The notes beneath the pieces are model-generated. The model had not been told where the DNA came from, made no database searches, and saw nothing but the letters and a program-made list of their open reading frames with translations. Both the position numbers and the translations under genes were made by a program. From positions 74,834,001 through 74,898,000 of the forward strand of contig OZ038379.1 of NCBI GenBank assembly GCA_964036045.1: 64,000 nucleotides of DNA. Direction: 5' to 3'. Below, piece by piece: positions 47,601 to 64,000 of this stretch (the first letter of the stretch is position 1; every line of letters begins with the position of its first letter). This DNA comes from Eutreptiella sp. 'Long Island Sound 2002' (taxonomy: Eukaryota > Protista > Euglenida).

Positions 47601-50330
47601 GTACCTGAACTCGTGTCTTGAAGAACATGAGTTCAAACTACCGGTGATCGAAGATCTTCTCCAAGGGCAGGCTGGAAACCATCTCTGGACCTTTCCGGAT
47701 CCGGAAGATGGCGTCCACCAGATGCCACTGTTGGAGGAGTGCAGGCATTTAACCGCCTTTTGCACCCCCGCAGGGACATTTGAGTGGAAGATCCTGCCCA
47801 TGGTCGTTAAGGTTGGGCCACAGGCGTTTCAGCACCTTGTGAGCTAGTGTGTTGGCCGCCTTAAAGCCCATATCGGACCCTACATAGATGACATTCTAGT
47901 AGGCACGCGACCCACTTGCAGTGGCAAAGGGAAACTCCTCAATTCGCAAGGCATAATGGAACGTTATAAGCTCGTGCGCGAATTGTTCGAAGTATTAAAG
48001 GAGTACCACTTGCAAGTTAAAAAGGAAAACGGTTTCCTTTTCTACACGCAAGTGAAGTACGTTGGCCACATCTTGCATGAAGGCCAACGCTCTCCGGCAC
48101 CTGGGAAGGTCGCCGCGGTGCGCGAGTGGTCCAAGGATATGATTCGGACACCAAAGCAGATGAAGAGTTTCCTCGGCATCTGCAATCGGTATTCGATTCA
48201 TATCCCGAACTACTCGTCACTGGCGGCGCCTCTCATGGATTCACTTGCCGGAAAGTATAAGTACGATCCTCATAAACGCACCAGTAAGATCTCAGTGCAT
48301 AAGCAAACCATCAGTTGGACTGATCTGATGTGTGACAACTTCGAGAAGATCAAAACATCCCTATGTGAGGCTTGGAGCTTGTATATACCCAGTGACCAAG
48401 GCTAGTTCTGCATCCATACGGATGCGTCCGACCACGGCATTGGCGCTCTCCTGGAACAGAAGGACGACCAGGGAAACTGGCGTCCCTGTGCTTTTTTTAG
48501 TAGAAAACTTCAGGGCAGCGTCAAATACGACGCTAACGGGAATGTGCTGTGGTATATGGGCCACTACGCATGGTCAGTGAGGGAAAAGGAGACTTACGCC
48601 CTGGTGTTCTATCTTTTGAATTTCAAAAGCTGGATATCAGGGCGCCAGGTCACTGTTTTCACTGACCATAAGTCCCTGGAGTCATGGTACAAAGAAGAGT
48701 TTTCCACCATGGCTGGTTCATTGGGACATCGCGGCCGGTGGCACGAATTCCTCTCCGGGTATAACATTGTAGTTGTCTACAAACCGGGAGTGGAAAACGA
48801 TGCCGCCGACGGGATGTCCCGCTGGGCCTACCCAGCCAGATTGGTGGATGACACGAACTTTCACCGTTCGGACGCCGATCTGGAAGGGGTAACCCAGTGG
48901 GAGGCCTCTGAGGGTGAAAAAGAGCAAAAGCTGAGTGCAGCAAACGGACGACCCTTACCGCAGGACATGCAAGAACAGCGGGAGCGCGATTATTTTCTGT
49001 TGCAGGTCATGAGGTTGCATGACAGTGTACATTATGACAGCAATTCGCTCCCGGACGAATCCGCAGTGGATGTTGTCCAGAGCGTGTCTGACCACTGTGA
49101 ACACTGTTGCCCCTTTCCGTCTTGCCTCAGTACGGTGAGTATGAGCCTCGATGAGGACTCCTCGTCTGAAGCAAAATCCAGTGTAGGCCCTGATGAGGCC
49201 ATCTGGAATGTGTTGGATGAGACGGAGGATGTGTCCCCACTGTGCTATAGTGAGGGAGATCCTGCGTGGGTTGCTGGTAGCCCCTCTTGCAACCTCACCG
49301 AGGTCAAAGTGCCGCCTGAGACCAAAATATTGTACGAGGACTGGATGCCCCACTACAGGGCGGACAGAACGTCCAAACGACTCCTGGATAGGGGTCTGGA
49401 GAATCAGGTTTCCATGGATGGATACCTCTGGGCCAAGGGACCACAGTGGAGTCATCGCCACATTCGTCGGCATGGTAAAATTTGTGTTCCGCAGTCCATT
49501 GTGTCTGAGGTCATCCGGGCGGTACATGTATGTGCCCACCTGGGTCAGGCAAAGGCCCTGGAGCTGTTCCTACAGCGTTTTCACGCTGACATGCCCTATG
49601 CCCGGCTGCGGGAAGCAGTGAACAAAACATTGTCGGACTGTGTGGTTTGCGCGCAAGCAAAAGCTAGACGCGGCCAATATCCTGACTCGTGCAAACGGTT
49701 TCCCATACCCTCGTTTCCTCTCAGCTCAGTGGCCATAGACTTCGTGGATTTAGCTGAAGTCCGTAACCAGTCAACCAAGACCAAGATTTTTGCCAACTAC
49801 GCTATGGTCATAGTTTGTCGGTTGACAGGATATGTGATGGCCATACCCTGCTGTAAGGAGGGGCTAGCCAGTTGTAAGGCTGCCGAGCTCTTCCTGCCTA
49901 GGTGTGGATTTTTCGTGGGCTTACCAAGAGAAATTGAAGCTGGCAATCAGTCGATCATCAGCAGCACCTTTTTTGATGCGCCGTGCAATCTTGCCGGGAT
50001 TGAACAGGCCAAGTCTATTATATATAGACCTAAGTCCAATGGCAGGGCTGAGAGGGCTGTGCAGAGTACCATCCTTACTCTGCGGCAGTACCTCCTCAGC
50101 AAGAAGGTGAGTTGGCTGGAGGCATTGCCACTGGCCCTGTGGGGTCTCAATGACCTCCCTGAGGCAGTGTCACCCTATTAGCCACACCGGCTGGTGTTTG
50201 GGCGCGACCCCATAGCGGTGGGCGACCTACCCCCGGTAGCGGACAGTGAGGGCTGCGAGGACGCCACGCAGTTTTTTAAGAGGGTGGCTGCGGAAAGAGA
50301 ATTGGTACAAGAAAGACTGGAGGCGATACT
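44685..50330 (+). pseudogene. pol: pol of element A (PR, MTase-like, RT, RH, truncated IN)
   Basis: LIDSG (Asp 44934), YIDD (47881-47892), HTDASDHGIG/SVREKE/FTDHKSL, CVVC, VAIDF, SNGRAER. Confidence 0.92.
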
Positions 50331-51416
50331 GACACATATTGATACGCCCTCGGATCTTGGCTACTGAAATACTCTCCATGGTGAAGAGCTTGTGGTCTTT
50401 CAAACCCCTTTTTATACTCTTTTCTGAGGCATATGGAGCACGCCTTTGAGAGGCAATGTGAGCAGTCTTCAAGAGTCATTGTAAGAGCAAGTAAGCACAA
50501 GAGAACCCGTAATACCACGCAAATACAAATTGTTCTAGGAGCTTTGCTCGCGCGATGAGACACTCTCTGGTGTCCTAAGAGACAAAGAGAGGAGAAACAA
50601 GGCAATAACCTAGGTCAATACACATGTAAACATACCTAAGTACCAAACCATGTGCTAAGGTTACATGTTTAGGAAAAATCACAATAAATCAGGGCACCAG
50701 AGGCCCTGTGACCTGAGATTCAGGTCTTCAACGACTGTCGTCGACAGGAACTGTCCTATGGTCAACATGTCTAAGTCAGTTCTGGGTCAAACCAAGGTCA
50801 AACAAGTCAAACAAAGTCAAAAACATGTTGAAAACATGGTTAAAACTTGAAACATGCGTCTCCCCCCATGCGCCAGCCTAGAGGCCTTAGGGCATTTTGG
50901 CGCCACATGATATTTTTTCTGGAAACCTATGGACTTATACTTAATATCCCCCATAGAGGAGGGAACGGCTGTCACAGCAGGCCGTCAGGAGATAATTGCC
51001 AACATAGTTCGTTTTCATGAAAAATGCCATAAAGTGCACAAAAAATCCACAATAATTCATCAAAAATTGATATAAAAACAGCTTTTCTGTAGCTTTTACG
51101 CACTTTCACGACATTTTTCATCAAGAAAAAAATGTTGTAAGAATGACGGCGACGACTGGCGCCCGCTGCCGCACCGTTGGTTCTAACTACTTTGAAGGTT
51201 CAATGAACCTTCAAATACATTGGAAACTTCAAACACCTTAGAAAAATGACTAAAAAACGATTTCCAGGCCAAGCTGGAGCTACTATCTGCTACTACACAC
51301 CAGCTAACATCTGCACTGGAGTGTCAGCAAACTCTTGGAGCTTTCCTAGCTTCCAAGGAGATACTTTTACCTCCAAAAATGAACCTGCGTATGAGGACAT
51401 GGCCCCATATGCATCA
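50330..51416 (+). repeat. Approx. 1.1-kb direct repeat, copy 1 (offset 2118 bp)
   Basis: Colinear with 52448-53508 up to GGCCCCATATGCATCA; contains a 25-bp palindrome at 51191-51215. Confidence 0.93.
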
Positions 51417-52447
51417 CCCCCCTCCTTAAAAGGTTTCTATGAGCCTTGTGTAGAGAAACCTCCAAGGGGTAAAAGTAACTCATGCTTTGCCCTATTTGCT
51501 TTTCCCGCTTTCAGTGTTTCGAAAAACACCCATGCTGAAAAAACAGACTTCTTGGGCAAGCAAACATAAGCAAAAGAACCAAGTATAAAATCACCTTGGT
51601 GCAAGTAAAGTGTATGGTTCAAACAACCTTAAAAGTAAGTATAGTACAACCAAACAATGGCAAGAAACGCCAGAAAACAGAAGTATTTACAGTATATACT
51701 CCTAAATATATATCACTGGGACTCTGGCAGGACTGGCAGGAAATGACAAAGGGCTTGGAAAAATCAAACATACATGACTAGAGAGGGTTAGCCACTCTCA
51801 GAGCCAACGGGGGTCTTATAATTCTTGAAGAACTTCTCCATCTCCTTGTCAAAAATCTCCAGCTCCTTGGCTGTGACTGGACGACGGTCTTTTCTTAATG
51901 ACGTCGTCGTCTGGCGACCGCTACCTTCGCTGGAGCTGTCCCACATGTCAAGTTCTTGGTGCCCTTGTTGTTGGGCTTCATAAAAATCAATTGCTTGTTG
52001 GAACTAATGTGGGGCATGGTCATACCATTTCATTGGGCTGGTTTATGGCCCATTGTCGTTGCTGGACGTCTCTGACGAACTTGTCGCAAAATATTCCGCA
52101 ATTTGCGCCGCTTCTGAACCAGAATAAGAGGCCCACCAAGCCTCATTGTCTTCGTCATGATCCATTTCTGATTTTCTTGAAGTTCTTGATGGTGCTCTTC
52201 AGTCCAAGTACTTGAGGAGGAGGTGGAGGTTGTGGAGGACATACCTGGCTGTACTGTCGCTCCAGGCCTTCCCAGGCCACGCCAGGCCGTCGACTGGTTG
52301 ATCTGCAGTCCAATCTTTGGCTTGGTGAAGAACTTTAGCTCCTTGGATTGGCTCCTTCTTGTAGCTTGTGCCAAGGGTCCACAAGCTTTGAAGAACACAA
52401 AGAACTCCAAGTTCTCCTTCAGAGCTGCATCAACTCTAGAACAATCT

Positions 52448-53508
52448 TGACGCGTATTGGTACACCCCTGGATCTTGGTTACTGAAATACTCTCCATGGG
52501 GAAGAGCTTGTGGTCTTTCAAACCCCTTTTTATAATCCTTTTTGAGGCATATGGAGCACTCCTGTGCGAGGCAATGTGAGCAGTCTTCAAGAGTCATTGT
52601 AAGAGCAAGTAAGCACAAGAGAGACCGTAATACCACACAAATACAAATTGTTCTAGGAGCTTTGCTCGCCCGATGAGACACACTCTGGTGTCCTAAGAGA
52701 CAAAGAGAGGAGAAACAAGGCAATAACTTAGGTCAATACACATGTGAACAAAGCTAAGTACCACCCCATGTGCTAAGGTTAGATTTTTAGGAAAATCACA
52801 GTAAATCAGGGCACCACAGGCCCTATGACCTGAGATTCAGGTCTTCAACGACTGTCGTCGACAGGAACTGTCCTATGGTGAACATTTCTAAGTCAGTTCT
52901 GGGTCAAACCAAGGTCAAACAAGTCAAACAAAGTCAAAAAAATGTTGAAAACATGGTTAAAACTTAAAACGTGCGTCTCCCCCCATGCGCCAGCCTAGAG
53001 GCCTTAGGGCATTCTGGCGCCACATGATATTTTTTCTGAAAATCTATGGGAGGGAACGGCCGTCGCAGCAGGCCGTCAGGAGAAAAATGCCAACATAGTG
53101 CATTTTCATGAAAAATGCAATAACATACACTACAAATCCACAATGACTCATTAAAAATTGATATAACAACAGCTTTTCTGTACCTTTTACGCACTTTCAG
53201 GCCAGTGTTGGTCAAAAAAATAATGTCGTAAAAATGACGGCGACAACTGGCGCCCGCTGCCGCACCGTTGGTTCTAATTACTTTGAAGGTTCAATGAACC
53301 TTCAAATACATTAGAAACTTCACAAACCTGAACGAACTGACTAAAATAACCATTTCCAGGCCAAGCTGGAGCTATTTCGTGCTACTACGCACCAGCTGAC
53401 ATCTGCACTGGTGTGTCGGCGAACTCCTGGAGCTTTCCTAGCTTCCAAGGAGATACTTTTACCTACCAAAATGGACCTGCATATGAGGACATGGCCCCAT
53501 ATGCATCA
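52448..53508 (+). repeat. Approx. 1.1-kb direct repeat, copy 2
   Basis: See copy 1; palindrome at 53282-53306. Confidence 0.93.
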
Positions 53509-54008
53509 ATACACAAAAAACAGTTGCAGAAGCTCCTAAAGGAACACCCTCTTTCTACCTTCGTTGCCGGTTAAATTTCATCAGAAAAGGGTTCGTTGCT
53601 TCCGCAATTTTCATGTTATACACTCGCAAAATTAATCCGATTTTTCAGACATTCGGAATCGGATTTTCGACTTCGAGGTCGCCGCACGGGATATGATGAA
53701 TTTCGAGTGGTCCTACATTTTTCCCCGATCATGAATCAACCTTCCTTTTGTTGTCTCCTTCATTTTTCTTGGAGATATAGTCGAAACAAAATTGATTCGT
53801 GAGGCCACTTTGAAGAATCATATCTCCGGCTCATTGCGAGGAATTTCAATTTTGAGGTATGAGCTGGTATCGCCTTGGTCTCAACTTATCTTAGGAAGCA
53901 TAAAACGCCTTTGATGTGTACACATGACCGGTGTAGCAAGAAACAATGGTCAAGAGGGTAGAAAGTGATTTATAACTCTTGGACCATGCAACCGAATATT
54001 TTTATGCG

Positions 54009-54034
54009 ACTTTCTGAGTGTCTATTTTTTTTCG
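54009..54034 (+). other. Complete euglenid spliced-leader exon (SL relic), not an SL RNA gene
   Basis: ACTTTCTGAGTGTCTATTTTTTTTCG, 26/26 to the Euglena gracilis SL as I recall it. It is followed by GGCTTC rather than a GT donor. Confidence 0.9.
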
Positions 54035-54300
54035 GGCTTCTTTTTCCTTATTCTATTGGTGCAATTCTATGTACATGCCCAACGCCCGTGTCTCCGTGTG
54101 CACCGTGAGATGACCGGCGTGTTAGAAGGAGTTGTTGAGTGTCAACGCGGGACCTCAAACATCCTTGGAAGCCCTCAGTTCGAATCATTTGGATTGGAGC
54201 TATTGTACTTGGGAGTTGGTTATTGCAAGGGATCTGGATTTGTGTGAAGGAGCCATATTTTACTATTTTTGTGGGAAATCGTGCAGGATAGGGCAAGATC

Positions 54301-57300
54301 ATGCAGAACCTGGTGAGAAGCAAGACCATAGGAGTGACGGGAAATGGTGGAAGGGGTACAGCAGGGGCCGGTCCTGGTAGGGACCTTCTTTATGGTAGCA
54401 GAGGATTACCTGCCCCCTACCGCCGCACCGGGGACTTGGGCCCTCATGAGCCCTGCCCAAGGACGCCCCGGGTGCAGATCATGGAGTCCGTGGAGTCGAC
54501 GCCGGACTTGGAAGCCCGAGAAGAGCGAAGATGCTCAGGACGGAGAGCCCTTGCAGGACAGGGGCTAGACATGGAGGACCTGGCCTCCATGTGTGAAAGG
54601 CAATGCCGCAAGGCTTGCAATCTCCGCTCCGCTGTGGAGGAGTTGGAGGAGACTGGCAGCAACGGCACAGCCCGGCGTTACCGGAAGCGCGGGTCCCCAA
54701 AACCCGCGGCGGAAGCCAGGGCGATGGAGACGGATCCCAGCTCGGTCAGGCTGTGGTCAGCTGCAGATTCCGAGGGGCATTCCGATGGCTATCGGACCGC
54801 TTTCCCTTCGGAGTCGGAGGAGATGGCCATACCGCCAACAAGGGCGAACACGGCCCCCGAACCCAGCCTGGAGCATGACGCCGAGGCGTTGGAGAGGCCT
54901 GCCAGAGCCAGAACGGCGCCTGTGGCCCGGCACACGGAGCCAAAGCGGGATAACATGGGCGACACACCCATGGCGGAGGAGTCCGAGGCGCCGGGAACCG
55001 TGGGATGCGCCGGATCAGGTGGATAGCACGGTGAGTGCCACTGCGAGCACGTATCCTTCCTCATCGGCAAGTATCCAAAGATGGGGATGGACGCCATCGT
55101 GCAAGACCTCCACCGACTGGACAACCAGAAGAACGGCCTAGAGGAGGACATCCCGGGGATCCTGGATGACCAGTCAGAAGCGGGGAGAGACATGGCGGAG
55201 CTGCGAGCGGAGCAGGACCGGTACCGGGAGAAGCTGGAGATGGCCCTGCAGAAGCAGCAGCGAGTGGTGGACAACCTCCTCCACCTGGTGGAGGACATGT
55301 CGGGACGCCTGAAAAGGCTAGAGGAGTTACAACCCCTCGCCTCGGGTCCGGAGCTCCCGGCAACGCCGGCAACGGCAGAGCTGGTGGAGCGGGTTAAGAC
55401 CCTCAGGAGCGCCATGGAAAAACCCATGGGCGGCCCTGCGGAGGCACCTTACGCGCCTCCGCGTGTTGACCCGGGTGCGCTGCTGTTTGTTCCCATGTTC
55501 AGCGAATCCATAATGCTCGGGGAGCATACGGCACCGGCTGGGTCCATGCGGGAAGAGCACGCAACCACGGACCTGAGGAGCCTGACGGTACAGATGTCCC
55601 ATGCCGTCCAGGATCCACCGACCACTACGGCTGCCCATGCAGTTTATGCGGAAGATGGGATCCAGACCATGCAGGGGCGAACCATGGGAAGGGCCGACGG
55701 ACATGGTCGAGGCCATCCAGGCGGAAACCTGTGGGTGAAGGACCCCACTACGGGGATATGGACAGCCGGTGGAGCAAGTCCTTCCCGCATCCCAAACCCC
55801 ATGGGTTCAGGCCCAACTGGACCACACACCATCGAGGAGAGGGAGGTACGGGGAGTGTACTCACACCCCCCGGCCACAGGTGGTATCCGTCTCGGTGGAG
55901 TGGTGGCTGCAGCCGTCGGAGACGCCATCAGGATTGACGACCTCAGGGGAATCAAAATCCCCTATCACGATGGCAACCCCTCCAACCTGGATGACTTCAT
56001 CCTGGATTGGGAGGACTTCGCCGAGGAGGTCGTCGGCGAGATGAAGGGAGCGCCAAGGGACAAGTGGGTATGTCGGACATTCCCACACAGGCTGGCGCAA
56101 GACCTGAAGGAGGAGCTCAGGGATCAGATCCGCGAGGGATGGATCCAGACGGAGCAGGCCTGCCTCCAGTGGCTGGAGGACGAGGAGCGAGTGGACGCCC
56201 CCAGTCAGAAAATGGAGGATTTGTGGTCCATTCCGCTGCCGCTGGAGCGCGGGGAGTTGAGGGTCCGGGTATGGAATTGGTATATCCGCAAGTACCGAAG
56301 AAGCCTCAAGCTTGTGGAGGACTGGAACGAGTCCAGCGAGATCCGACACCTGCTGAAGGACGTCCTCCCCGGCCACTGGAAGAGGAGGGTGGAGGACGAG
56401 GAGAAGAAAAGAGCAAAGAAGCGCGTGGCCGTACGGATCATGGCATCGGAGGACACCCACGCCGGAATAATGGAGTTTTTCTGGCGAAACCTCGGCGAGC
56501 CCAGCCGAATGTTGGGGTTGAAGAACGCCGTCTACGTGGAGGTATTTGGCGACACCATGGGGCAAAGGCTGATGCGCCTCAAAAACGCGGAGTGGACGCG
56601 CGGAGAGCTGCTGAGGATGCAGGTCATCTTCGCCCGCATGAGCCTGGACGAGATCGTGAAGTACATCACGGTGGAGCTGAAGCTCAACGCCAAGAACGAG
56701 GCCCACGTGCAGGATCGACAGGGCCAAGGACATCGAGGTCATCGGGAAGATCGTCAACACCGAGAGGTCAAGGAGGACACGGTCGGCACCGCGGAGGAAG
56801 GGAATGGAAGCGGCCAAGGTCTCTGGACCGCGACCACCCGAGAGGATCAAGAAGAAGCCCACTTCTTCGCGTTCGTAGCGCACAATATGAAGGGGCATGG
56901 GCAGGACAGGTCCAGGTGGAGCCGCCTGGACCCAAGGACCAAAAACCGCAGAGAACCGCGGAGGATCGGGAACCCGCCGCTCTCGTTCCGCGAGTACAGA
57001 TCACAACACGACGGTTGCTGGGTCTGCTACGGCAAGGGGAACAACCATGCACATGACCACCGGCATTGCAAGGTATATGAGGATGACAAGAAGACCTACT
57101 TCGCCGCCCATCCCAACAAGAAGCCCAAGGAGCAACGAATTGCCGATTGGAAGGCAAAGGGCGGAGACGGTGGAAATGGCCAAGGAAAAGGCCAAGGGAA
57201 AGGCCGAGGAAAAGGCGATGGTGGAGGAGCCGGCCCAGACCGACGTGTGAGGTCGATCGAGGAGGTTGCTGAGGACATGTTGAGGACGTCGGAGGAACTC

Positions 57301-57372
57301 AAAGCCCAGCAACGCGGTGGACAAAGTCGGGGCGAATCGCAGCAGGAGGGAGCTGCGGCAGGCCACGTCTAG
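54301..57372 (+). pseudogene. gag: gag of element B (one internal TAG at 55024-55026)
   Basis: ORFs 54301-55026 and 55081-57372 share a frame. Coiled coil, capsid-like region (IPYHDGNPSNLDDFILDWEDF) and atypical knuckle CWVCYGKGNNHAHDHRHC. Confidence 0.85.
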
Positions 57373-60300
57373 AGGAGCCCCCACGGGAGTGGGACCCCGG
57401 ACGCCTCTCCTCCGAAAATCAGTGGAATCCTAGAGAAAGCGAAGGCACATCGGGTGCCTAAGAAGGCTCCTGAAGAGCCAAAACCACTGAGTTTCGCCAC
57501 TCCCAACCCCTGGAGCGCCCTGCCAAGGGAAGTGTATGTGGGCAAGGGACGTGGCAAGAAAGAAGGAGCGACCACGGAGAGCCCCGTGGACGGGCAGGAC
57601 CAGCCCAAGATCTACACCATCCGTGACCATACCCTCGAAGTCCTGATGCACCCGGATGTGCTAGAGTTGCATGCCGTGAGAGTCGTCCATACACCGCATG
57701 GTGACGAGCGGCAGTTGCACTTGAAGGTGCGTGTACGGTGCGGACAAGAGGAGTTGGTGGTGGATGTTTTGGTGGATACGGGTGCCCAGGTGAGCCTGGT
57801 CTGGAGAGGGTTGTTCAAGGAGGAATCCCTGCAGCCCAGCCGTAGACCGGTACGTCTGAAGGTGGCCAATGGAGAGATCCTGGGTGGTGGCACCCATGAG
57901 GCCACTATCAGTATGGAATTCTGGGAGCATGAGCGCTTGAACCGCCCTGATTTGGCGAAGAGAAGCACTCTACCCGGGAACTTCTATGTGGCCGACATTA
58001 CAGATTGGGATATGATCATGGGGTACGACTTCATGGTGGGAAACGCCATTGGAGCCCTTCCCCATCGTGCAACGCTGGTCCGGGAGGATGGTGAAAGCCT
58101 TACATGGCTGTCCACGGACTATGCATGCGGATCATCCCAATGGAGTGCTGAGGAAGAGGATCGGATCGTCCAAGCGGTGCAAGCTGTGGGTGCCAGGTCC
58201 AGAGGAGACCGCGGAGTTCAGCTCACGGAGTATGGAATGGCGCCGCAGGTGTATGCCAGGATGATCCAGACGCTGGGAGCCGAAGCGCCCGAGACGGACG
58301 TCTTCGCTTCCCGGGATGCCCCACTTTTGCGGAAGTGTAGGAGGCATTGGCATCGAGGAGACTCAGCCTGGCACAGGCATTGGGGTTTGAAGGACTGGGG
58401 GCCCATGTATTGGCATGGCTCCTTGGAAAATACCACACGTACGGTGGAGAAGATCGTCGCGGATAGGGCGAAGGGGATCCTGGTAATAACCGGCATAGGA
58501 TCCACCCCATGTCCGCTGGAAGGTCTCAAGTCGACGATGGATTCCATCACCCTGAACTAGATGTCATTCGGGCCAGAGGAGGAGTTGTTCATGGACGCCA
58601 AGGGTTTATCAATGCCCTCCCCGGGTCAAGCGTGGGGCACCAAGGCTTTCCTGGTGGATGGGGCGCAAGCCCAGCCCACGGGTGATGAAGCATTCATCCG
58701 TAGGGTTGACGTCCTGTCCCACGCCGAGATCGACCACGTCGTCAACTACATGCGGATGGGGATGCACGACCGTGTGGCAGCCAAGAAGAGGCGGGCCATG
58801 GTCACATCTCCGCATTGGTGGGATGAGAAGAGGTTGGTCACCGGCAAGTACGAGAAGGATGAGTTCGTGGCGAGGGTCATGGATCACATCGCGGACCAAT
58901 ATGATGGTCCGGTTGGGTCGGACCCGCCGACGTGGGATTTTCCAAGAATGGGGGCCCGTAGCGACAAGAACTCGGCTGATGCCGCAAATTTCCGAAGATT
59001 ATCGGTGGGAAGAGCTCCCCACGACGATGAAGACGGCATATCAAACGAGGAGAAGTCGGACTCGGACCCGGAAGAGGCCTATACCGCAGTGCGGTCGGTT
59101 GTATCGATACCGAAGCAAGCGGCTGAAGAGGCCCAGGAGAACCCGAAGGTCGCCGAGCTGAAGGGGAGGCTGATAAATGCCTATCCGCGGCTATTCAGTG
59201 GCGTCGCCAACAAGAACCCTGCATATCGTGGGAGGTTTGGCACAGCGAGGATCAAGCTGAAGCCGAACCCCAAGATCTATCGTCATCGGGAGTACCAACT
59301 TCAGGGCGATCGGGCCAAGGCCATGAAGAAGTTGTTGGCCGAGTTTATTGAGCGGGGCTGGATCGAGCCCTCCGACAGTGAGTGGGCCAGCCCAGCCTTT
59401 ATCGTGCCCAACAAGGAGAAGGGCGAGTGGAAGTTGGTGGTTGATTACAGGGGTTTGAACGAGCAAACGGAGCACGACTCGTACTCGCTTCCGCTGATCG
59501 ACACCATCCTCCAAAAACAACAAAAAAAGCGGATCTTCACGGTGTTAGACTTGAAACACGGCTATCACCAGATGCCGCTACACCCGGACTCCAGGCCCTG
59601 CACAGCGATGTCGACGCCGCTGGGGCCCATGCAGTGGAAAGTGGTGCCTATGGGCGCCAAGAATGGCAACGCCGCTTTCCAGCGCATGATGGAGGACCTA
59701 CTCGGTCCTGTCCGGGACTGTGCCGACCCCTTTGTGATTGACATCATCATCGGGTCCGGCACGGAAAACACGACTGAGGACGAGCTCATTGAAGCGCATG
59801 AGAAGGATCTGCGCCGAGTGCTTAGCGAGCTGGCCAAGCACAACATGGTGTGTAAGCCCACCAAAGCCTGACTCTTCGTGAAGGAAGTGGAGTTTGCGGG
59901 TCACGTGGTTGGTCACGGGCAACGCCGTCCCATGCCTGGGAAGCTGGTGTCCCTGCACCACTGGGAGAAGCCCCAGACCGTCAGCGAACTCCGATCCTTC
60001 ATGGGGTTCTGCAACTACTATTCGGGCTATGTCCGGATGTATGCAGAACTGTCGGGGCCGCTGCACAAGATGCTGCACGTGGGCAAGTTCGATGGCCGGA
60101 AGGGGAGCAAGAAGAAGCTTGCCTGGACCCCTGAGGCCGAAGATGCGTTCAGCCGCCTGAAGGAGCGACTCCTGGGGCAACTGGGGCTATTCCTGGTGGA
60201 CCCGGACAAGGGATTTGTGCTACGGACGGACGCCTCGGACTATGCTGTAGGGGCAGTCCTCGAGCAGGTCCGGGATGACGGGTCGCACGTACCCGTGGCG

Positions 60301-62373
60301 TTTTGGAGCCGGATCCTGGCCGAGGGCCAACGTCGAACCTCGACCGCGAGGGAGAAGGAGACGTACGCCATTGTTTGTGCGCTCAGGAAGTGGTCTGGCC
60401 ACATCGGATTACAACCGGTGGTGGTTTGTGCGGACCATCAGTCCTTACAGAGCTGGCACAAGGAGCACGTTGACACCCCCTCGGGACCGGCGGCAAGGAG
60501 GGCCTGATGGCATGAGACGTTCGCCAAGTTGGACCTCAGCATCGTATATGTCCCGGGGAAGGACAACACTGTGGCCGATTGCCTCAGTCGATGGGCCTAC
60601 CCCGCGGGAAAGGCATGGATGGACATATCCAGCCATGGGGACGCCGAGGAGACCGAGGAGGCCAAGCGCATCATCGAGATGGAGAAGGCCATGGAGCAAG
60701 AGGGGGTCAAGTGCTTTGTGGTGATGGCAAACCGTACAGACCTGGCCAAGTTCCGGGGTGCCCGAGTCCAAGCTATTCGAGAGGAAACCCTCGAGCAATG
60801 GATGGTGGCCCCTGTAGAGCTAGTCAGGTCGGTGCTTACAGAAGACTGGTCGGATGACTATGCGGCATCCAAGCACTGGGGGAGGTACTGGAATGCCGTG
60901 AGCGCCCCTACGGACGACGAATGGCCTGAGGGCTTGACCGAGGATGGGGACAAATTATTCCTCAAGGACAAGCTATTGGTCCCTGAGAACCGAATGGAGG
61001 AGCTCATTGACCACTGGCATAACGCCCAGCTCATGCATCCTGGTCGGGACAAGATGCAGCAGGACCTAGAGTGGCGCCTCAAGTTCCCACCGGGGTACTA
61101 CGCCATCTTGGACAAGTACTGCGGCGACTGCGCCGTGTGTCGGGCCACAAAAAGCCCTAACCATTCCACAGCGGGTAACCCGGTGTATACGGCTATACCG
61201 GAGGCCCCTATGCGGTCCGTGGCCATCGATGTATTCGCCATGCCTGAGGTCACCGTGGAAGGAGAGACCTACGACTGTGTCATTCTGGCGGTGGATAGGC
61301 ACAGCGGGTATATCGTGGCGGTCCCTGGCAAGAAGTCCAAGAAGAAGGACAAGAAGGACAAGCATGGAGTGGGTCTGCAGGCCAAGACCGTCGCTAATGC
61401 CATGATCAGACATTGGCTGGCGATTTTTGATGTCCCAGCTGTCATCTGCAGCGATCGGAGCAATCAATTTGTGGGGACGTGGTTCAAGACGATGTGCAAG
61501 CACATGGGGATTCGGCACGCCAAGACCGTGGCGTACCACAGCCGGTCGAATGGCCGGGCTGAGGTGGCTGGGCGGCAGATGTTCAAAAAGTTCCGCCAGC
61601 TGCATATTGACGAACCGGGCCGGAATCGGTACAATTCGCTGTGGAGAGTACTCCAGGCGTACCACGACCTTCCGGGGCCCACTGGACTGTCGCCCAATCG
61701 TATCCTGTTCCTACGGGATCGAGTGTCAGGCACTCTCCCGTGGTTGAACCATGGCAAAGTGGCCCGGGATGCGAGTGCTATGATGGCTGAGGCGGACGAC
61801 ACGGCGGCCAAGGTGTGCAAAGCACTTCAGGACGAGCACGAGAAGAGGGCCAAGTACTTCAAGCAGGGAAAAGTCCAGAAATATGCTCTCAGAGACACCG
61901 TATGGGTGGAGCGGCACCACAAGGATGTCCTGTCCAGGCATCGGCAGGCGTCTTGGTATGTGCCGGGGGTAATCGTGCGGAGAGTCGGGCAGGATGTGTA
62001 TGCGGTTCGTGTGGGGGATAACAAGATCCTGGACCGCGACCATACCCCGCTTCGTCCCCGAGCACTAGACCCCAGCGGACGTCCCGTCACCTTCGAGTTC
62101 ACAGCCGGCGATGTGGACTCGGATGACGAGGGTGAGGACGACGACTTCACCGCTGAGAGGATCCTGATGGACAAGCCGGACCCGGGGACGCCTCGGGGGA
62201 GGCTATATAAAGTCCGTTGGAAGGGATTCGCCGCATCCAGGGATTCGTGGGAGCCTCCGAGCAGTTTTGTGCCGAGGTATACCACGGTCTGGATGGATTA
62301 TCTAAGGAAAAAGAACATTTCCTTGGATGTCAAGGACGTGTTGGTCCATTTGGTGGCTGCAGCAGCACCGTGA
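57373..62373 (+). pseudogene. pol: pol of element B (PR, MTase-like, RT, RNase H, integrase, chromodomain); stops at 58560, 59871 and 60507
   Basis: VDTGA (Asp 57775); WASPAFIV, VDYRGLN, LDLKHGYHQ; YxDD site reads FVID (59731-59742); TDASDYAVG, REKE, ADHQSL; H...H...CAVC, VAIDV, D-x35-E (SDRSNQF...NGRAE); chromodomain AERIL...YKVRWKGF...SWEP. Confidence 0.95.
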
Positions 62374-62754
62374 TGGATCCACCTTGGCATTTTGTTTGTT
62401 TTTGTGCTTGGGAGACGGGTGAGGGCGTTCATCCGGGGATTTTTGGGCCTTCATTGGCCATAGACCCCCTTCACTCGATCTCCACATATATATTTCATTG
62501 TGGTATACTTATTTAGGTCGACCGACGACGTATCTCTATCTTTGATCCCCTTGGTCCATGTTGTAGATCAAGAGGAGACCGGATATGGCGGAGGGCACCG
62601 ATTATGAGTGTCCTCACCCCTCCCTTGGGGCATGGGGGACGCCTACGCCGTATGTGGGGCCTCCATGTGTCCTTGGGACATGGCGGGGGGGGTTGGAGCC
62701 CATTGGGTTCCTCCCGTCCTCTCTTCAATGACTTCTGAGCAGATACAACGCTCT

Positions 62755-62765
62755 GAGAAGGGGGG
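62755..62765 (+). other. Polypurine tract of element B
   Basis: GAGAAGGGGGG immediately followed by TGAAG, about 390 bp after the pol stop. Confidence 0.65.
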
Positions 62766-63033
62766 TGAAGCCTGTTCGGACCCCCGTGGCCATCTTTGGG
62801 TCACTTGGGGTGTGTATCTATGGGCCGGCAAGCCGCCATTGGCTGTTATCATACTCTCCCATCCTGACCTAACCTGATGTGATAGTGTGATAGGCTTGGC
62901 CATTCCAGCTATGAGCGGCAATACTCAATACCGAGGCGCCGCCGGCTGAGATTTATATATCAGCATTATCTTGAAGCGGTATCGTGGGGCCTCGCGGAGC
63001 GTGAGGCCTTCGACCCTTGAGACTCACGGTACA
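62766..63033 (+). repeat. Putative 3' LTR of element B (end uncertain: CA at 63026 or 63033)
   Basis: Starts with TG directly after the PPT and contains TTTATATA. No second copy is available in the window to confirm it. Confidence 0.45.
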
Positions 63034-63760
63034 CTGCGCTGAACTTGTTTCTTTGATCTCTGCCTTGCACTGATTTTCTCTTTCTTGCACCACTGTTTTT
63101 TCTGCCATTTTGCTATCACAGCTTGTCTTGGCCTTGCTTTGCTTTGACGTGAGAAAAACAAGATGCCGATCCCTTAGTATTTCTGCATACCTTGCCGCCG
63201 CACTCTTGGTCCTGCTTTGCTTTCACGTGAGAAAAGCTGAACACCTTGCGAGCTTTTTGAACCACAGGTTGATTTTGATAATAAAATATCCTGCTGCTCG
63301 TTGCATGCAAACACACAAAACCCTTTGATCGTCCAAACCCTGCTGGCACCCAATGGCAAACGCAGCGCACCAAATCCACAGGTGGGCTAACCTGTATCGA
63401 GGGTTTCTTTCAGTGAATCCATCATAGGCTGAGACCTTCCTTGCTGTACCACGTACAGTTTTCAGTTTCCGCGATGCTGAGCGCCATAGGCCAGTAGCCG
63501 TAGGCCCTCAACGAGGGCACTCTTGCCACGATGCTAAGCGCCGCCGGTGTATTTCACGACCTTTGGCCCTCAACGAGGGCGTTGCTTGCGTCCACGATGC
63601 CCTGGCATGTTGCCCCAGGACGAGGGATGCGGCGTTCAGGCCAGTGTCGGCCTACAAAAAATTCTGAGAACCTTGGACGGTCCTCCCATATGACACAAAC
63701 CTGAACGTCAACGACAAACAGATTCCGTAACAAACAGAGTTAACATACACGACGCAAATC

Positions 63761-64000
63761 GCATATATTATGCTACAGAATTCAACTATATAAAAATAAA
63801 TGCCAAATAAAAACACGTAACGGCGGCTATTGGCCGCCTCCAGTCACTCTCCTGATGCAAAATTGCATCATTTGCGTGGACTTCGCGCTATGCGCCAGAA
63901 GCCTTCGCGACGCTAAGCTCTGCTACAAAAATGCAAACGCGGGGATCGTTACCGATTCCGCTTCGCTTTATATAGTTAAATTCTGTAGCATAATATATGC
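63761..64000. mobile_element. MITE with approx. 34-bp terminal inverted repeats
   Basis: GCATATATTATGCTACAGAATTCAACTATATAAA (63761-63794) versus the reverse complement of 63967-64000, 1 mismatch. The window ends in the right TIR, so no TSD can be checked. Confidence 0.8.

Follow-up and report, generated by a model that had tools for sequence, protein, structure and literature searches.

A spliced leader inside the long terminal repeats of a euglenid retrotransposon points to replication from trans-spliced element RNA

In the euglenid Eutreptiella sp. 'Long Island Sound 2002', a minority of the long terminal repeats (LTRs) of one retrotransposon family carry the complete 26-nt spliced leader (SL) between U3 and the remainder of the LTR. 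The leader ends exactly where canonical copies have a splice acceptor, and we propose that element RNA tagged with the SL by trans-splicing has probably been reverse-transcribed and carried through the element's own replication. The analysis departs from a single damaged copy in the window, by which we mean the whole 64,000-nt stretch of DNA that was analysed (contig OZ038379.1, positions 74,834,001 to 74,898,000, forward strand).

RESULTS

The SL lies within the 5' LTR of the window copy

The sequence at 54009-54034 on the forward strand is an exact match to the SL published for Euglena gracilis, ACTTTCTGAGTGTCTATTTTTTTTCG (PMC6242988). It is the sole match in the window at up to three mismatches, and shuffled sequences give an expectation of 0. 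A published SL primer begins with ACAC, that is, two bases 5' of the start of the 26-mer (PMC5654406). Directly 3' of the SL stands GGCTTC, with GG in the place of a GT donor, and the ATG at 54301, 266 nt 3' of the SL, opens the long gag frame. The first-pass annotation had described a complete, donor-less SL at this distance from gag, and the description holds. In this 2.28-Gb genome, SL-RNA genes read ...GAGAGGTAC/SL/GTATATACTCGCTCC (loci L001-L008; the slash marks a junction here and below), whereas the window reads ...TTTATGCG/SL/GGCTTC. We therefore rejected an SL-RNA gene as the identity of the window SL, which has neither a GT donor with SL-RNA intron nor the conserved upstream flank.

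Alignment with a canonical copy of the family, C21, places the SL inside the LTR. Window positions 53569-54021 correspond to LTR 372-824 (96% identity), positions 54030-54397 to LTR 2089-2456 (95%), and 54030-62962 as a whole to the internal region followed by LTR 1-206. The earlier reading, in which the copy has the SL at its start and lacks a 5' LTR, is not supported: the SL is internal to that LTR, with 440 nt of U3 upstream and 358 nt of LTR plus the primer-binding site (PBS) downstream. The start at 54035 falls exactly after the canonical AG acceptor (...CCAATTTCAG/GGCTTC in canonical copies). It had also been noted that nothing upstream resembles the putative 3' LTR. Within the window this is true, because the two LTR remnants (372-2457 minus 812-2093, and 1-206) do not overlap, but the upstream U3 is LTR all the same. 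The features are collected in Table 1.

Table 1. Features of the retrotransposon copy in the window
Feature	Position	Strand	Remarks
5' LTR, U3 part	53569..54008	+	Canonical LTR 372-811; 96% identity to C21 LTR
Complete 26-nt SL inside LTR	54009..54034	+	Replaces LTR 812-2093 (presumed outron)
3'-terminal part of 5' LTR	54035..54392	+	Canonical LTR 2094-2457; ends ...CTTCTTTA; 95% identity to canonical 2089-2456
PBS, TGGTAGCAGAGGAT	54393..54406	+	Directly after LTR end; same sequence after the 5' LTR, not the 3' LTR, in C21, C23 and C16
gag-like ORF	54301..57372	+	ATG inside LTR; 1023 codons in the canonical copy
pol, same frame as gag	57373..62373	+	Pfam: protease, ~500 unassigned residues, RT, RNase H, integrase, near-threshold chromodomain
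Polypurine tract (PPT) region, CTCTGAGAAGGGGGG	62749..62765	+	Same sequence before the 3' LTR in C21, C23 and C16
3' LTR remnant, first ~200 nt (TGAAGCC...)	62766..62962	+	96% identity to canonical LTR 1-206; then sharp break
Start of 1.84-kb palindrome adjoining the cut 3' LTR	62961..64000	.	Runs beyond the window end

Both LTRs are incomplete. The 5' LTR lacks its first ~371 nt, with a sharp break at 53568/53569 (the local alignment begins exactly at 53569), and no more LTR sequence follows the 3' break as far as window-equivalent position 72000 (locus L062). Since the 3' LTR is cut before its informative part, the SL state of this copy is visible for the 5' LTR alone. Poly(A) is absent at the 3' side, where a normal PPT and LTR start are found instead; the absence of both a poly(A) tail and a target-site duplication (TSD) stems from later truncation of the two LTRs. 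The open reading frames between 54301 and 62373 all share one frame, interrupted by a premature stop in gag (55024) and three extra stops in pol (58558, 59869 and 60505), four in all; the stop at 57370 is the conserved in-frame stop between gag and pol. With ~96% identity to canonical copies, the window copy is an old, damaged SL-type member of the family, truncated at both ends. It may also be a permuted or circle-derived insertion (LTR 372-end ... LTR 1-206); 165 nt (LTR 207-371) are missing, and the flanks are unrelated repeats.

The surroundings are repetitive. A palindrome begins exactly at the 3' LTR break, with non-LTR sequence beyond; its arms (62961-63794 and 63967-64800, the second in L062) are 834 nt each and 97.5% identical around a 172-nt loop. 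It may be a foldback element or a rearrangement. Directly 5' of the truncated 5' LTR, a ~2.1-kb unit is repeated in tandem across 50330-53508, its two copies sharing 89% identity over 1088 nt; before them lies an ORF (48544-50181) with RNase H and integrase zinc-finger matches that belongs to a different gypsy-type element.

The family is a gypsy-type element with a long LTR

Judged by its sequence, the family is a Ty3/gypsy LTR retrotransposon, probably of chromovirus type, and numbers thousands of copies. The LTRs of canonical copy C21 are 2457 nt long, 99.6% identical to each other, and run TGAAGCC...CTTCTTTA. TSDs are 4 bp, GTGG in C21 and TGGC in C16. In C21, C23 and C16, TGGTAGCAGAGG adjoins the end of every 5' LTR and GAGAAGGGGGG stands in front of each 3' LTR; the former, the PBS, may be complementary to the 3' end of initiator tRNA-Met. 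The gag ATG is within the LTR, 92 nt before its end.

Pfam searches of pol returned protease, RT, RNase H, integrase zinc finger and core, and a near-threshold chromodomain, and the order PR-RT-RNase H-IN is found in both the window copy and the uninterrupted canonical pol. The chromodomain match (PF00385) falls just below the gathering score of 25.1 bits in either case, with 24.8 bits (E 2e-5) for the window and 21.9 bits for the canonical sequence. The gag product matched no Pfam family, and the ~500 residues between protease and RT (window ~57900-59400; canonical pol ~180-700, L069:1000-6063) matched none at E 0.1. Intact copy C21 has a single internal stop, equivalent to window 57370, which separates a gag of 1023 codons from a pol of 1688 codons in the same frame. 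This one conserved stop (L069:997-999) suggests stop-codon read-through rather than frameshifting between gag and pol. LTR elements termed DAM-LTR were described in E. gracilis in a 2026 preprint (10.64898/2026.05.21.726589).

The SL junction coincides with a splice acceptor in canonical LTRs

All 25 of the canonical copies sampled read ...CATATGCCAATTTCAG/GGCTTCTTTTTCC (...TTTCAG/GGCTTC), a pyrimidine-rich tract and AG, exactly at the SL junction. This acceptor sits 364 nt before the LTR end, 5' of both the gag ATG and the PBS. The first-pass annotation had proposed comparison with LTR-bearing copies, and these carry the AG precisely at the equivalent of 54035. Its reading of the genomic fusion of SL and element as a trace of SL trans-splicing followed by reverse transcription gains support from the acceptor at the junction. 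We rejected two other sources for the junction: a DNA deletion cannot supply 14 SL bases that canonical copies lack, and an SL-RNA gene would bring its GT intron. For the sequences compared here, the best account of the SL junction is that it was made by trans-splicing and then copied into DNA.

The upstream end of the SL also falls on a recognizable site. Of the 25 canonical copies sampled, 22 have ...AATGCG/ACTTTCGAGTGTACC at LTR 812, with at most one base of difference after the slash; the U3-end motif is ...ATGCG, and ACTTTCGAGTGT comes after it, again to within one base. The remaining three gave no match to the motif used in the search. The bases ACTTTC-GAGTGT at this position equal 12 of the first 13 nt of the SL with one gap. 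In the window (...TATGCG/ACTTTCTGAGTGTCTA...), U3 runs on into the SL through this microhomology without a break.

Two smaller junction classes were found, and both also join seamlessly. In the 451-type (four LTRs, from two elements), the SL follows LTR ~451, with GATTTTTTCAG/SL against canonical ACATTCAGAATC. In the 270-type (two LTRs), it stands at ~265-270, with CTATC/CTTTCTGAGTGTC against CTATC/CGTTCTGATTGTC in many canonical copies. When the canonical LTR is searched with the first 17 SL bases, the site at 813 ranks first and that at ~268, the site of the 270-type, second; the 451 site is weakly SL-like and outside the ten best matches of the LTR. A score as high as that of the SL-like motif is reached by ~10% of shuffled LTRs, and the motif at 812 may be chance homology. 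What chance does not account for is that the major junction class and one of the two minor classes use the two best SL-like sites.

Complete elements carry the SL in both LTRs

The canonical acceptor junction occurs 10,176 times in the genome at up to two mismatches. The SL-GGCTT junction was counted 43 times exactly, 94 times at up to one mismatch and 289 times at up to two, the last figure including unrelated SL retrocopies, and the U3(811)-SL junction 71 times at up to three mismatches. About 70-100 SL-type LTRs thus stand against about 10,000 canonical ones, roughly 1-2% of the surviving LTRs of the family; these genome figures are pattern counts and lower bounds, with the letters read at five SL-type and 26 canonical loci. 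The suggestion that the family had captured the SL is partly right, as it applies to that small share of LTRs.

At least 18 pairs of same-strand SL junctions are spaced 9.4-9.7 kb apart, in line with the LTR-to-LTR expectation of 10,886 - 1,256 = 9,630, and are full elements with the SL in both LTRs. Two were followed at the sequence level, C23 and C16, whose paired SL-type LTRs are about 1195 nt long and contain the complete U3 (LTR 1-811). The LTRs of C23 are 1193 nt and 99.67% identical; this element has an internal deletion of 2.2 kb, and a clear TSD was not found. Those of C16 are 92.1% identical, with TGGC as TSD. Integration by a non-canonical route, as first deduced for the window copy, is contradicted by these sister elements, in which the SL is present in both LTRs, in one case nearly identical between them and in the other within a 4-bp TSD. 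At G000:C7:52783190-52797343, three U3-SL junctions lie exactly 2283 nt apart and a fourth 9561 nt further on, an arrangement that looks like a tandem array of SL-type LTR units beside a full element.

SL-type LTRs occur on several canonical backgrounds

SL-type LTRs share their U3 haplotypes with canonical ones. Haplotype H1, ATATTTTAATGCG, is present in 27 SL-type and 1930 canonical LTRs (exact matches; 1.4%), and haplotype H2, ACATTTTATTGTG, with three linked differences, in 13 and 590 (exact matches; 2.2%). Among further, minor haplotypes, TTTTTATGCG is that of the window and its nearest canonical relatives, C21 and L049. The 451-type lies on a diverged U5 variant that is also known with the canonical acceptor.

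Over 700-1850 nt 3' of the SL, we found no diagnostic substitution common to four SL-type elements, which are equally near canonical copies and each other (95-97%). A tree of 32 copies over 1.85 kb, these four included, is star-like and does not allow the origins to be counted. Read most simply, these sequences reflect capture that recurred in different canonical lineages, although with the four SL-type elements in hand recurrent origin and a single origin with recombination are inseparable.

One public RNA library contains the junction

The family was found in four public metatranscriptomes, at small shares, and in six runs of unknown kind. The latter cover the canonical LTR at huge, even depth across U3, like DNA unitigs. 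One estuary RNA library (run X1) yielded a single 304-nt contig with the SL-GGCTTC junction, ...TCTATTTTTTTTCGGGCTTCTTTATTGATT, which reaches ~140 nt upstream of the SL. This contig may derive from DNA or from a 3'-LTR transcript; it independently supports the junction but not a 5' end. The junction was absent from the metagenome contigs scanned. Three contigs of the X1 metatranscriptome are 95-99% identical to the LTR family (L063:5585-7794). A close relative of the sequenced organism is present in that sample, and the family is possibly transcribed there.

DISCUSSION

A proposed route through trans-spliced element RNA

We consider it probable that SL-tagged element RNA containing the PBS was reverse-transcribed, with first-strand transfer through microhomology between SL and LTR, and that this happened repeatedly. 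Trans-splicing at LTR 2093/2094 would take 812-2093 off the 5' end of the RNA and add the 26-nt SL, so that the leader of the gag mRNA would measure 292 nt. Since the PBS is 3' of the acceptor, the tagged RNA would keep it and could still prime the minus strand, with tRNA-primed strong-stop DNA running as far as the first base of the SL. This DNA, complementary to ACTTTCTGAGTGT at its 3' end, would pair there with ACTTTC-GAGTGT at 812 in the 3' LTR part of the RNA or, rarely, with the weaker SL-like sites near 452 and 265. With R gone or mismatched at the terminus, synthesis would go on into U3 after the transfer. Plus-strand synthesis and the second transfer would then give two identical short LTRs (U3 1-811 + SL + 2094-2457, ~1195 nt), and integrase would insert the product with a 4-bp duplication. 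The SL is expected in both LTRs because the R-U5 of both would come from the RNA 5' end (SL-(2094-2457)-PBS) and the U3 from the 3' end. The window copy would be one such product, afterwards truncated in both LTRs and decayed.

We infer acceptor use in vivo, the strand-transfer step and 812 as the transcription start. Should R extend beyond the acceptor, a 26-nt flap would have to be resolved during the transfer. A further conjecture is that the SL-like 12-mer at 812 is a transcription start under selection, either an initiator like that of SL-RNA genes or a relic of an older capture, that serves as landing site for first-strand transfer. SL-type elements would then be a replication-competent, 'pre-spliced' lineage, and the sites at ~265 and ~452 fossils of earlier rounds of SL capture. 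We hold this extended version to be improbable; if true, SL-type RNA begins with a genome-encoded leader and needs no trans-splicing, and the LTR was built by repeated SL capture.

Alternative histories

The capture may instead have occurred once, by the same RNA route, and founded an autonomous SL-LTR lineage whose transcript starts on the encoded SL, with recombination with co-packaged canonical RNAs spreading it over several U3 haplotypes. A single junction (811/SL) in about 70 LTRs, the identical H2 junction string in 13 of them and a tree compatible with one origin (the number least forced being one) are what such a history would leave, and the young C23 element (LTRs 99.67% identical) implies recent activity of an SL-type copy. 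However, SL-type copies have no substitution in common outside the SL, their ratios to canonical copies are alike on the two haplotypes (1.4% and 2.2%), and there are two more junction classes, of which one sits on a U5 variant also seen in canonical form. In addition, if the canonical poly(A) site is within the deleted 812-2093, SL-type LTRs may terminate improperly. On this evidence we regard a single capture as unlikely, though worth keeping in view.

Far less plausible is the reverse polarity, in which the family started out with the short SL-LTR and an insertion of 1.28 kb into the SL produced the canonical LTR. ACTTTC-GAGTGT at 812 could be the left half of an old SL, and TTTCAG/GGCTTC is one base from the SL end TTTCG/GGCTTC, but the right half of the SL, CTATTTTTTTT, is present in none of 25 canonical copies, which have GCCAATTTCAG, a normal acceptor, instead. 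Moreover, SL-type LTRs, ~1% of the family, show no greater divergence than canonical copies and include a young element, and one insertion cannot give three positions of the U3-SL junction.

We give almost no credence to an LTR-less cDNA of trans-spliced mRNA inserted non-canonically, for example by LINE machinery, so that the copy begins at the SL. Many LINE-type families of this genome do start exactly at the SL, and the window copy has neither a TSD nor a complete LTR. Nevertheless, the 440 nt upstream are U3 of the family, with a seamless join at a point shared by about 70 other LTRs, the 3' side has the PPT and a normal LTR start without poly(A), and the mapping of the window onto C21 refutes the SL as the boundary of the copy. 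A LINE-mediated, SL-headed retrocopy was rejected on the same grounds. An assembly artefact or cDNA contamination, which the first-pass annotation had named as a risk and for which nothing speaks, is equally remote, as dozens of loci across many chromosomes share the junction, in paired LTRs and with copy-specific substitutions, and a contig of an unrelated public run has it too. The preferred reading remains repeated reverse transcription of SL-tagged element RNA.

Comparison with known systems

The SLACS, CZAR and CRE non-LTR elements of trypanosomatids insert at a fixed position within the SL exon of SL-RNA genes. They resemble the present case as retroelements tied to SL sequence in a euglenozoan; here, in contrast, the promoter flank and the GT intron of the SL-RNA gene are both absent. 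A SLACS/CZAR-type insertion was rejected for the window copy, in which the SL is complete, the SL-RNA gene flanks are absent and the element is of LTR type. Retroviruses and LTR elements also leave copies made from spliced RNA, through cis-splicing of internal introns with R intact. In both situations a processed RNA with PBS and packaging ability is copied and the spliced-out segment is missing from the DNA, whereas trans-splicing here would swap the RNA 5' end, probably R itself, for host sequence.

The SL-headed LINEs of the same genome carry the same 26-nt SL and likewise point to trans-spliced element RNA as template. There, however, the SL is the extreme 5' end, with unrelated sequence upstream at the sites sampled, as would be expected if target-primed reverse transcription reaches the end of the RNA. 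The SL of the LTR element is internal, stands in both LTRs, is confined to ~1% of copies and calls for a strand transfer. Cer1 of Caenorhabditis elegans is likewise a Ty3/gypsy element with an SL trans-splice acceptor near the RNA 5' end (PMC3315495). It differs in that SL1 is found on a 2.4-kb spliced subgenomic mRNA alone and not on the 8-kb genomic RNA, and a genomic copy with SL1 in the LTR is not reported in that paper.

In dinoflagellates, SL relics on retrogenes and mRNA recycling are established (Slamovits and Keeling 2008, as summarised in PMC3229502; PMC5585692; PMC12014239). There, too, a DNA-encoded SL marks passage through trans-spliced RNA and reverse transcription. The dinoflagellate SL, however, heads processed copies of host genes, with truncated relics in tandem and an inserting machinery that is unknown, whereas here the full SL stands between U3 and the remainder in both LTRs of an autonomous element, probably placed by the element's own replication, with the outron deleted. 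We found no description of an SL inside euglenid LTRs in the literature searched, the coverage of which was incomplete. Retro-copying of trans-spliced RNA is already known; the distinct mechanism proposed here is canonical LTR replication with a host leader replacing R.

Our results indicate that a euglenid LTR retrotransposon is expressed via SL trans-splicing at a fixed acceptor in its own LTR. They also indicate that the translated, leader-tagged mRNA is not cleanly apart from the replicated genomic RNA, with ~1-2% of surviving LTRs coming from the tagged form. They suggest that first-strand transfer is workable on ~12 nt of chance homology once R is spliced away, which makes the junctions an in-vivo readout of the homology needed. 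Besides the SL-headed LINEs, this would be a second, mechanistically different route for writing the host leader into a 2.3-Gb genome, and SL-type LTRs are ready markers with which to date and count such events.

Other SL sites in the genome

Among 30 SL sites sampled, eight are SL-RNA genes, one is an LTR of this family, and most of the others head repeat families in which similarity between copies ends 1-5 nt upstream of the SL. Of the 22 sites sampled outside SL-RNA genes (L009-L030, G000:C1), 17 have a C directly 5' of the 26-mer. SL-RNA genes have it too (...GGTAC/ACTTTC), in line with the ACAC start of the published primer, and the leader may therefore have entered DNA as a sequence of 27 nt or more. 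The eight SL-RNA genes (L001-L008, G000:C1:27992-459853) are spread over 430 kb, each within at least 3 kb that is 99% identical between copies; they therefore sit in large dispersed or long-period repeats. One of them, L001, has GATT after the SL, not GTAT.

Just 3' of the SL at L010 (G000:C1:1041249-1044274, minus strand), the full SL, AC plus ACTTTCTGGGTGTCTATTTTTTTTCG, and truncated AGTGTCTATTTTTTTTCG follow in tandem. By analogy with dinoflagellates, these relics show a 'recycling'-like pattern that would reflect re-splicing at an AG inside the SL. Four sites (L011, L012, L025 and L026, G000:C1) belong to an SL-headed family reading SL/GTGTCTTTTTGTCCATGCTTGCCC..., whose copies have ~23 nt of C-rich sequence upstream in common; in this family the SL may be slightly internal, or C-rich sites may have been targeted.
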